Positions 32,281 through 35,123 of a stretch of 64,000 nt of DNA are shown piece after piece. The DNA lies in assembly GCF_041956535.1 (NCBI RefSeq), contig NW_027192193.1:1293192-1357191 (forward strand), read 5' to 3'. Position 1 is the first letter of the stretch. Every line of letters begins with the position of its first letter. The notes under the pieces were generated by a model. The model searched no databases. It worked only from the letters and a program-made list of their open reading frames with translations, and was not told the origin of the DNA. Made by a program: the position numbers and the translations under genes. Origin of the DNA: Calcarisporiella thermophila CBS 279.70. Its lineage: Eukaryota > Fungi > Calcarisporiellomycota.

Positions 32281-32541
32281 TCTGAATGATCTTTGCACTG
32301 CTGGTATATACTCTTATATGAGCTGATATATTACAACCGATGTTGATGATGTTAGGGTTTGGATTGTAGGCATATAGTATCTTGAAAAGATGGAGAAAGT
32401 ATGAGTAGAGGAAACTGGCGTTAGCATTTCTGGTTTAAAAATCTTTGGGCTATCCAACCCGTAAATATCCGAGATATCTTCATATGAAGTCACATTTAAT
32501 ATGTTGATGCTGAAGAATTACGGGCCAAAATAAAGAGGACC

Positions 32542-33497
32542 ATGGTACCTCCAACGCGGTACAGAAGATTATTATGCAATGTTGTACCGCTACTATTCCA
32601 ACATGGCAGGCAGAGCCCTCGTAATATTTACGAGAGGGGATTTCGAATGCAACTGACTAGTGGAAGAGACAATGGTAAACTGCTACATGTCTCGAGATTC
32701 TGTCTGATAGATCATGTCTAATTATTTTTTTTTAAGTTGCCAGTAAAGCAGAAAAATGTGATCGAATTGCAGAAGGAAGTGTTTTGGAAAGAAGACCCAA
32801 GAAACTAAACGCGGTAAATTGCACAAGCATCTGTTTATATATTCATTTTTCAATTAGTAATAGGTAGTTTATGTAGTTGCCCTCCATGCCAGAGACCGAC
32901 GTGCAAAGATTATTTAAAGGTCCATTTTCGACAATTAGCATGGAATGCTTCAAGCTAGCAGTGCTTGCTTGGCCAGAGGGTGTTGTCTATAAACGTACTT
33001 GCAAATTGTCCAATTCTCTATACCATTATTTTTACCGAGCCTACTTTCTATGTAGACAAGAAAACTGGCGAACCAGTGCCGTATCGTGTTGCGTTTATTA
33101 CCACAAAGAAGGAGGTGAGTAAATCAGCGGTTGTAAGGCATCGTGCAGGAAGACGAGTTCGTGAAGCGGCGCGGCTATTTTTTCCCAATCTTGCGCGTGA
33201 AGGTAGGAACACTGGGATCCATATTTCTTTCATATCACTTGGATTTTAATTCGTCTTTAATACACAGCACATGATTTCTTCTTCTTTGTCAAACGCAGCG
33301 CACTTAGCGCCGAGTGGACTGAACTGGTTGAGTCGATGAGAAAGGCATTGCTCGATCCTAAGCTATACGGAAGGAAGAAGAAGTCGAGCGTAATAGTAAC
33401 GCGGGGAGAAGCTGGGCCGTTACCCATGGCAACTTCGACGAGGAATCGCAGTTTAGGCAGTGGGATACGAAACAAAATAAAGAAAACACAAATATAG
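32542..33497 (+). CDS. rnpA: Bacterial-type ribonuclease P protein component (RnpA/C5-like), nuclear-encoded, putatively mitochondrial; 5 predicted exons
   Basis: Predicted exons 32542-32674, 32737-32813, 32877-32994, 33056-33202 and 33268-33497 join in frame (234 aa). They encode DVQRLFK...FKLAVL...YRVAFITTKKEVSKSAVVRHRAGRRVREAARL...HDFFFFVKRSALSAEWTELVESMRKAL. The N-terminus is Arg-rich. Confidence 0.8.
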
Positions 33498-33607
33498 AAA
33501 ATAGACGCTAGTTGTATTAATTTAGACTCCTACAAAATCGATTCGAACAGCAACTTAATTCACTGCGAAACTTCGACCTTTCTCTCTAAATTCGTAAAGA
33601 GCGAGAA

Positions 33608-35123
33608 ATGTCACTTGCAGTAGGAAACACCCCGCTAATTGCGCTCAATTTCGAAACAGAAAGTTCCATCGAAATTCTCGCTAAACTTGAATACCAAAAT
33701 CCGAGCGGCAGCATCAAAGATCGCATTGCACGATGGGTATTAAATGGTAGATTAAACATTTAATCATCACTCTCTATCTTATCTAATCTGGATATATATA
33801 CTATTGATTGGTCTAGATCTTCATGCTAAAGGAAAACTCTCCCCTGATGCTACGTACATCATATCAACTAATGGAAATTTCGGCATCAGTGTTACTCTTC
33901 AACTTTCCCGACTTCTTCGCCCTGCGAATAAACACAAGGTGATTTGCGTTGTCCCCGAGCGCACAAGCACCGATGCAGTTCGCATTCTGAAAACGCTTGG
34001 GGTTGAGATAGTACGTACTCCCAATGAAGCTCGACCAGATGCTAATGAGGGAAGTGCCGCAGTCGCCTATCGACTTGCCCAGCAATTCAGAAATGTCGTA
34101 GTCTTGGATGAGAATAAATGTTGTGGCTTTGTGGAAGCATATAAGCAACTTGCCGACGAGATATACGAGCAATGCGATGGGAAGCTTGACAAATTGTATG
34201 TTGGCGTGAGCACTGGTGGAACAATATCGGGCCTAGCTACCCTCCTTAAGGAAAAAATCCCAGATTTGCAGGTCGTTGGTGTCGAACCTGCTGGATCCAA
34301 GATTGGTGAGAACGGCGGCTCCAGTTCCCAGCAACAATTCCACGGAGGTGCCCCAATATCTAACTGGAAGGTCGAGGACATCGGGTCGCTTTTCGAACCC
34401 CCTTGTCTGCGACGAGAGGTGGTGGACACATGGGTCAAGGTCTCTGACAAAGACGCTTATTCTATGGCTCGAAGACTTATCCGAGAGGAGGGACTCCTTG
34501 CTGGCCCTTCTTCTGGTGCTGTTGTGAGCGCTGCTCTCAACTCCACCCAGCAATCTGCGTCTCGCGTTGTCGTGGTTTTTAACGATAGCGCAAGAAATTA
34601 TACCGGAACGCTGCTCTCTGATGAATGGATGCTTTCTGAAGACTTAATGGCGGAGTCAATGGCCCGCACGATTGCCTATCTTGAAAGTGAAAGGTATCGT
34701 GCTGCGAGTGTCGAGGATCTCCAGCTCCCTCCTGCGGTCACAGTTTCTCCTACCTCAACCCTGGCACACGCGCATGACACCATGATGGAAAGAGAGTTCT
34801 CGCAGCTGCCGGTGCTCGACGCCGATCGCAAACTTGTTGGCTACATATCGCTCGATACCATTGCAACACATTTGAGCGATGGGAGCGCCAGTCCCACTGA
34901 CGAAGTCTCGAAATGGATGATTTCGTTCCACAAGCGAGGGCGTGGAGGACAAAAACGGGAATATACGGTCATCACTCCTGATACGCCTCTATCGCAACTT
35001 GCCAAATTCCTGGAGCATCATTCATTTGCGGTGGTGACCGATTCCTACGATGTAAGATGGTGTCTGGGGATAGTAACCAAATTTGACCTGTTGACCTTTT
35101 TGAATCGGCGCGGAGGAATGTAG
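33608..35123 (+). CDS. Divergent cystathionine beta-synthase-like protein (fold-type II PLP domain plus CBS-domain pair); 2 exons
   Basis: VGNTPL, KLEYQNPSGSIKDR (PLP Lys), GVSTGGT, VVGVEP, MARRLIREEGLLAGPSSG; C-terminal FSQLPVLD...LVGYIS and LGIVTKFDLL. Intron about 33747-33816. Confidence 0.85.

Follow-up and report, generated by a model that had tools for sequence, protein, structure and literature searches.

Structure of the locus

A spliced gene for a bacterial-type RNase P protein (RnpA) is located on the forward strand at positions 32542-33497 of the fungal window, the window being the whole 64,000-nt stretch of DNA that was analysed. Its 705 coding nucleotides, corresponding to 234 codons and a TAG stop, are distributed over five in-frame exons of 133, 77, 118, 147 and 230 nt, and the four introns that separate them are 61-65 nt long, all of the GT..AG kind with the first one ending in AAG, and have a GC content of 25-34% as against 40-50% in the exons. 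The features of the locus are compiled in Table 1. The sequence-only reading of this DNA had proposed five GT-AG exons joining into 234 amino acids, and this structure is borne out by the coordinates, by the open frame and by the junctions of an independent public gene model (P0001), which contains the identical four introns and splits the same three codons. A homologue on an environmental contig (L003) lends further support to introns 2 and 3, since the sequence spliced at their junctions is represented there by a single uninterrupted ORF. The motifs on which that reading relied are likewise present in the translation, exon 3 encoding TDVQRLF, exon 4 RVAF..RHR..REAAR and exon 5 both HDFFFFVK and WTEL.

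Table 1 Coordinates of the RnpA gene, its exons and introns, and associated features in the window
Feature	Positions	Strand	Remarks
Exon 1	32542..32674	+	Start ATG; Arg-rich N-terminal extension (possible presequence); last base opens a split codon
Alternative start, Met36	32647..32649	+	P0001 begins here (MQLTSG); context tttcgaATGC, less favourable than at the first ATG
Intron 1	32675..32736	+	62 nt, GTAAAC..TTTAAG, 31% GC; junction also in P0001
Exon 2	32737..32813	+	Linker ahead of the RnpA core; KKL motif aligns with P0003
Intron 2	32814..32876	+	63 nt, GTAAAT..ATGTAG, 25% GC
Exon 3	32877..32994	+	N-terminal part of the RnpA core: helix-1 region and first strands
Intron 3	32995..33055	+	61 nt, GTACTT..ATGTAG, 34% GC; contiguous in L003
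Exon 4	33056..33202	+	Central strand and long RNR-motif helix; PF00825 on the exon alone; pLDDT 90-95
RNR-type motif AVVRHRAGRRVRE	33127..33165	+	His replaces the usual Asn
Intron 4	33203..33267	+	65 nt, GTAGGA..ACACAG, phase 1
Exon 5	33268..33497	+	Last strand HDFFFFV, C-terminal helix WTELVESM, basic tail, TAG stop; helices modelled
'Intron' of the public model	33451..33599	+	149 nt, GTTTAG..GTAAAG; joins the RnpA gene to the next gene and removes the RnpA stop

The contig that carries the gene is longer than 1.3 Mb, and the gene is embedded in it among eukaryotic genes. Its upstream neighbour is a divergent ORF, while the downstream neighbour (33608-35123) encodes a PLP-dependent enzyme with a PALP domain and two CBS domains, an architecture that resembles cystathionine beta-synthase. 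Nine ATGs, each opening a short frame of 2-10 codons, are found in the divergent intergenic region at 32299-32541 (about 244 nt); two of these (32501 and 32507) are placed just upstream of the main ATG and would constitute uORFs if the 5' UTR extends to that point. Across the whole 64,000-nt window no Rfam family was detected at the gathering score, nor was any tRNA gene.

Start codon and putative presequence

The ATG at 32542 is set in a strong context (aggaccATGG, with A at -3 and G at +4), and an in-frame TAA is found 45 nt upstream of it. It is the position and the context of this ATG that assign the first 35 of the 234 codons, exon 1 having no homology support and the public model P0001 beginning at Met36. 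By composition count, seven Arg, no Lys, no Asp and a single Glu are present among these first 35 residues, in agreement with the Arg-rich, acid-poor extension described in the earlier reading, and R-x-F and F-R-M occur near residues 32-36 of the N-terminus as counted from this putative start. Read from the first ATG, the N-terminus has the composition of a putative mitochondrial presequence; if translation were to start at Met36 as in P0001, the presequence-like part would be lost.

Membership of the RnpA family

Profile searches were conducted with the exons singly, and the whole-domain work was done with residues 1-190 of P0001, which is devoid of the first 35 codons. The HMMER comparison with the Pfam family PF00825 (Ribonuclease_P; gathering cut-off 22.3 bits), by which the sequence-only reading had proposed to check its assignment, gave scores above the cut-off both with exon 4 alone (27 bits) and with P0001:1-190 (45.3 bits, E 9.9e-12, with an alignment extending from position 32 to position 105 of the 109 in the profile). 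When the entire 28.2 Mb assembly was scanned in six frames, exon 4 was the sole place at which PF00825 was recognised (27.2 bits). The NCBIfam equivalog model for rnpA (TIGR00188) aligned residues 44-151 of P0001 to profile positions 13-104 of 111 with 30.8 bits, below its cut-off of 38.35, which implies that the protein is homologous to this family while its divergence is too great for automatic assignment of the same function.

A profile built from three eukaryotic sequences only (alignment A1), namely the window protein and the two homologues described below, retrieved eight chains from the PDB, all of them RNase P protein, with a best E of 1.2e-4, and each of the 114 profile hits among 5.8 billion proteins carries PF00825, the few named ones being alphaproteobacterial. 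Searches with a single sequence were too weak to detect the RnpA family in this case: phmmer with P0001:1-190 matched no RnpA among the PDB sequences, a word-indexed search with the single sequence yielded no match, and the 48 residues of exon 4 compared with 1.84 billion representatives returned only P0001, the two homologues and two chance hits to repeat proteins. The protein belongs with bacterial RnpA, the RNase P protein also called C5, and the bacterial-type identity claimed at the outset is upheld by the Pfam match, the profile search of the PDB and the predicted fold.

Predicted fold and RNA-binding helix

The AlphaFold2 model reached pLDDT values of 80-95 over residues 71-160, and the region of helix 1 and the cleft was modelled with low confidence (pLDDT 52-67 for the part encoded in exon 3). 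The alignment supplied to the program (A2) had 50 rows, 47 of them bacterial and mostly bacterial RnpA, which is a caveat on the modelled fold. When the model was compared with the PDB by Foldseek, each of the best 16 matches was a bacterial RNase P protein, with some 110 aligned columns and TM scores of 0.66-0.76 by target, after which the matches drop to E values of about 0.2. The predicted fold is the alpha-beta sandwich of RnpA. A fold search of the Atlas returned bacterial rows only.

In the RNR-type helix, none of the 50 rows of A2 departs from V100, R102, R104, R107 and R108, and these five residues, one Val and four Arg, are shared by all three eukaryotic sequences; R110, A112 and A113 of the RNA-binding helix are also kept. 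Position 103 is Asn in 100% of the 47 bacterial rows and is occupied by His in the window protein and by Ala in P0005. Conservative replacements are also seen in several further columns that hardly vary in bacteria (G87A, T89I, V128F and R132K).

Eukaryotic homologues and a shared intron

Two homologues were identified on environmental contigs, P0003 (encoded on L003) and P0005. The region of L003 that matches exons 2-4 is one uninterrupted ORF, followed by an intron of 75 nt (721-795) whose aligned codon and phase (phase 1) are identical to those of intron 4 in the window, and the translation beyond it resumes with FDYTIIVR, which corresponds to HDFFFFVK. The homologue sharing this intron position has only 38-46% identity. 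In P0005, an insert of 24 residues (53-76) beginning with Val falls exactly at the spot of intron 4, and is probably an in-frame intron that was read through by a prokaryotic gene caller. Beyond the RnpA core, the frame of L003 (798-1400) goes on for at least 170 residues until it runs off the contig, and the second half of this extension abounds in Pro, Ala and Arg; the tail of the window gene, in contrast, is short and basic.

Further leads came from the Atlas. A structure search pointed to a cluster from Zoopagomycota with 77 proteins of 254 residues, 82% of which carry PF00825, and feature leads with scores below 0.9 pointed to a cluster from Basidiomycota (98 members, PF00825 in 18%) and to a cluster from Ascomycota bearing no Pfam family. 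Should these leads prove real, the family would have a wider spread among fungi than one would gather from the literature.

Phylogenetic origin

For the phylogenetic placement, RnpA sequences were drawn evenly from five groups, comprising the Alphaproteobacteria (the class of the Phenylobacterium genome, 30 genomes), the Pseudomonadota, the Cyanobacteriota, the phylum of the Clostridia and a small-genome class. For the last group 31 genomes were searched, the starting genome plus 30 drawn from its class; all measure 0.6-1.7 Mb, sizes that are atypical for Gammaproteobacteria, and the record title of the starting genome, "Nevskiaceae bacterium", seems at odds with its classification in the collection. 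The maximum-likelihood tree was calculated under LG+C20 from a short alignment of 115 rows and 131 columns. The three eukaryotic sequences formed one clade on a long stem, with support of 99/90 in this careful tree, and that clade fell inside a set of 53 rows with support of 100/98. All 30 of the evenly drawn Alphaproteobacteria belong to this set, together with 14 selected Alphaproteobacteria and six rows of the Pseudomonadota sample, and on the other side of the 100/98 branch stand the Cyanobacteriota, the phylum of the Clostridia, the small-genome class and the remaining Pseudomonadota. Within the alphaproteobacterial-side set, the tree gives no supported position for the eukaryotic clade.

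The placement rests on the maximum-likelihood tree, as raw score comparisons did not discriminate between the groups: the phmmer median was 14.3 for the evenly drawn Alphaproteobacteria, as against 15.6 and 16.6 for two outgroups. A motif scan of the genome collection, whose hits were nearly all alphaproteobacterial, was set aside because its pattern had been drawn from alphaproteobacteria-like hits. The comparison with alphaproteobacterial RnpA that had been suggested along with the first description locates the gene on the alphaproteobacterial side. As judged from the tree, the gene is of alphaproteobacterial ancestry and likely descends from the ancestor of mitochondria, and the combination of a shared eukaryotic clade with this placement fits such descent rather than contamination.

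Proposed role and alternative explanations

The window contains a spliced nuclear RnpA gene of alphaproteobacterial ancestry, and the most likely reading, to which we give a probability of about 0.65, is the inference that its product serves as the protein component of an RNase P ribonucleoprotein in mitochondria. The parts of the earlier interpretation that stand firmly are the nuclear and spliced nature of the gene, with its contig of more than 1.3 Mb and eukaryotic neighbours, its RnpA family membership and its alphaproteobacterial kin (100/98); the mitochondrial role is carried forward at the probability just given. According to the proposed scheme, an RnpA gene of the alphaproteobacterial ancestor of mitochondria would have come to reside in the nucleus, and its product, translated from the ATG at 32542 with an Arg-rich presequence, would be imported into mitochondria. 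By analogy with bacteria, the basic RNR-type helix would bind a bacteria-like RNase P RNA encoded in the mtDNA and the central cleft could hold the 5' leader of precursor tRNAs, whereupon the P RNA would be able to cleave these precursors at physiological salt.

The genome was also interrogated for other components of such an activity. No match to PRORP (PF16953) was obtained in the genome and only sub-threshold matches of 16 bits to RPM2 (PF08579), and hence no other known mitochondrial RNase P protein is seen there. COX1 and cytochrome b had no match in the 28.2 Mb assembly, which implies that the mtDNA is absent from it, and the lack of a match to the bacterial-type rnpB model (RF00010) in this same assembly is accordingly uninformative with regard to a mitochondrial rnpB.

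An unlikely alternative, albeit the one that survives best, is that the gene is a genuine RnpA descendant which has been reused, its product serving as an RNA-binding protein of RnpA fold in some other mitochondrial or cellular RNA task with no part in RNase P. The divergence of the protein could be read in this manner, with its score below the TIGR00188 cut-off, the change of RNR to RHR and several altered columns that are near-invariant in bacteria, and so could the long N- and C-terminal extensions, which are absent from bacteria. The Basidiomycota lead cluster, with PF00825 in 18% of its members, would agree with it as well, inasmuch as no mitochondrial rnpB was reported in Basidiomycota in a review of 2012 (PMC3790967); were those leads real, an RnpA-like protein need not be tied to rnpB. 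However, the Atlas feature leads score below 0.9 and are leads only, and all three eukaryotic sequences have kept the one Val and the four Arg that never vary in the P-RNA-binding helix, within what is predicted to be the whole RnpA fold. The failure to find any other known mitochondrial RNase P protein in the genome, and the precedents of Ostreococcus and Andalucia, in which RnpA is paired with organellar P RNA, also speak for a subunit of RNase P instead of a reused protein.

It is quite improbable that an alphaproteobacterium passed the gene horizontally to a fungal lineage at a later time, in place of inheritance from the endosymbiont. Such a transfer would be compatible with a eukaryotic clade placed among Alphaproteobacteria whose exact position is not given by the tree, and with the very patchy distribution of RnpA in eukaryotes (PMC7050145). 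Against it, four introns, one of them common in position and phase with a homologue of 38-46% identity, speak for a long past in eukaryotes, the three eukaryotic sequences are united in one clade on a long stem, and the Zoopagomycota lead cluster has 77 members of which 82% carry PF00825.

We regard it as very improbable that the true product is a fusion of 668 residues, consisting of the RnpA domain and the downstream PLP-dependent CBS-domain enzyme, although P0001 itself is such a fusion model and only 110 nt lie between the TAG at 33495-33497 and the next ATG at 33608. P0001 (668 aa) reads ..TSTRNR-KRE-MSLAVG across the fusing intron, which is 149 nt long and has the donor GTTTAG, whereas the four other introns of the gene measure 61-65 nt and have GTA-type donors; with more than twice their length and a different donor, it is probably an annotation artefact. 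Moreover, the PALP match of the downstream protein starts at its residue 2, so that this protein is complete alone, P0005 terminates with a tail of comparable length, and the extension in L003 is a different one. In the public annotation, the RnpA protein is hidden in a chimera with the neighbouring enzyme gene. Finally, bacterial contamination or a dead pseudogene is practically negligible as an explanation, seeing that spliceosomal-type introns interrupt the frame (the four introns had been cited against contamination from the beginning, and the gene structure and contig context agree), that the contig exceeds 1.3 Mb with eukaryotic neighbours on both sides, and that the conserved motifs stand in a spliced frame that runs for 234 codons without a stop.

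Relation to known RNase P proteins and significance

Compared with bacterial RnpA/C5, especially that of Alphaproteobacteria, the window protein presents the same domain and predicted fold, the helix with R102, R104, R107, R108 and R110, the strand with D126 and the C-terminal helix. It differs in being encoded by a nuclear gene with four introns that is not placed beside rpmH, in having an N-terminal extension of about 75 residues and a basic C-terminal extension of about 45 residues, in the RHR that stands for RNR, and in its score below the equivalog cut-off.

Whether genes of this kind had already been described was left undecided in the sequence-only reading, and it can be answered in part. 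Nuclear RnpA is already known in prasinophytes, by Lai et al. 2011 as referred to in PMC4919922 and PMC7050145, and in Andalucia godoyi; what is new here, according to our literature search on RnpA and fungi, in which no report of a fungal RnpA was found, is the fungal case. In Ostreococcus tauri, the nuclear bacterial-like P protein acts together with organellar P RNAs (PMC4919922). Like the window gene, the prasinophyte gene is a eukaryotic nuclear RnpA gene, and its protein works with an organelle-encoded bacterial-like P RNA. It differs in being green-algal and, going by these secondary accounts, in that the organelle served is not settled, and that biochemistry and E. coli complementation have been carried out, whereas the fungal gene is known from sequence. 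In the jakobid Andalucia godoyi, a mitochondrion-targeted RnpA coexists with a P RNA encoded in the mtDNA, and this is regarded as a rare ancestral feature (PMC7050145). Its gene is nuclear and highly diverged, as is that in the window, and the Andalucia protein has predicted mitochondrial targeting and a bacterial-type P RNA in the mtDNA as its companion; the two organisms belong to different supergroups. The same paper counts RnpA among ancestral features that eukaryotes have lost or show in a highly punctate pattern, and it names no fungal case (PMC7050145).

Two other proteins are known for the same task in other mitochondria. Rpm2 of S. cerevisiae (PF08579) is a nuclear-encoded subunit of mitochondrial RNase P that acts with an mtDNA-encoded RNA, which is the role proposed for the window protein, but it is unrelated to RnpA in sequence and has a mass of about 105 kDa. 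PRORP/MRPP3 (PF16953) does the same work in animal and plant mitochondria, but as a protein enzyme without RNA, and PRORP has been reported as absent from fungi (PMC10941002).

In the review of 2012, all zygomycete mtDNAs sequenced up to that time had rnpB, most of them with a near-consensus structure, and, yeast apart, no protein of the mitochondrial RNase P of fungi had been identified, zygomycetes and Aspergillus included (PMC3790967). The known protein partners are confined to budding yeast, in the form of Rpm2, which is unrelated to RnpA, and a nuclear RnpA in a fungus would be a concrete and testable candidate partner for the bacteria-like fungal mitochondrial P RNAs. It would also extend the eukaryotes that keep RnpA from prasinophytes and Andalucia to opisthokonts and help to date its replacement by Rpm2 or PRORP. 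We lean slightly towards the broader proposition that early-diverging fungi keep a two-part mitochondrial RNase P, composed of an mtDNA-encoded P RNA and a vertically inherited nuclear RnpA. If true, opisthokonts would have their first such case, the long-missing protein that goes with the bacteria-like P RNAs of zygomycete mitochondria would be identified, and RnpA would have given way later, and independently, to Rpm2 in yeasts and to PRORP in animals.

Apart from the mitochondrial activity, a nuclear RNase P RNA (RF00009) was located on another contig at 1040035-1040348, with 102 bits over the full length of the model, which indicates that the organism also has the usual nuclear RNase P.
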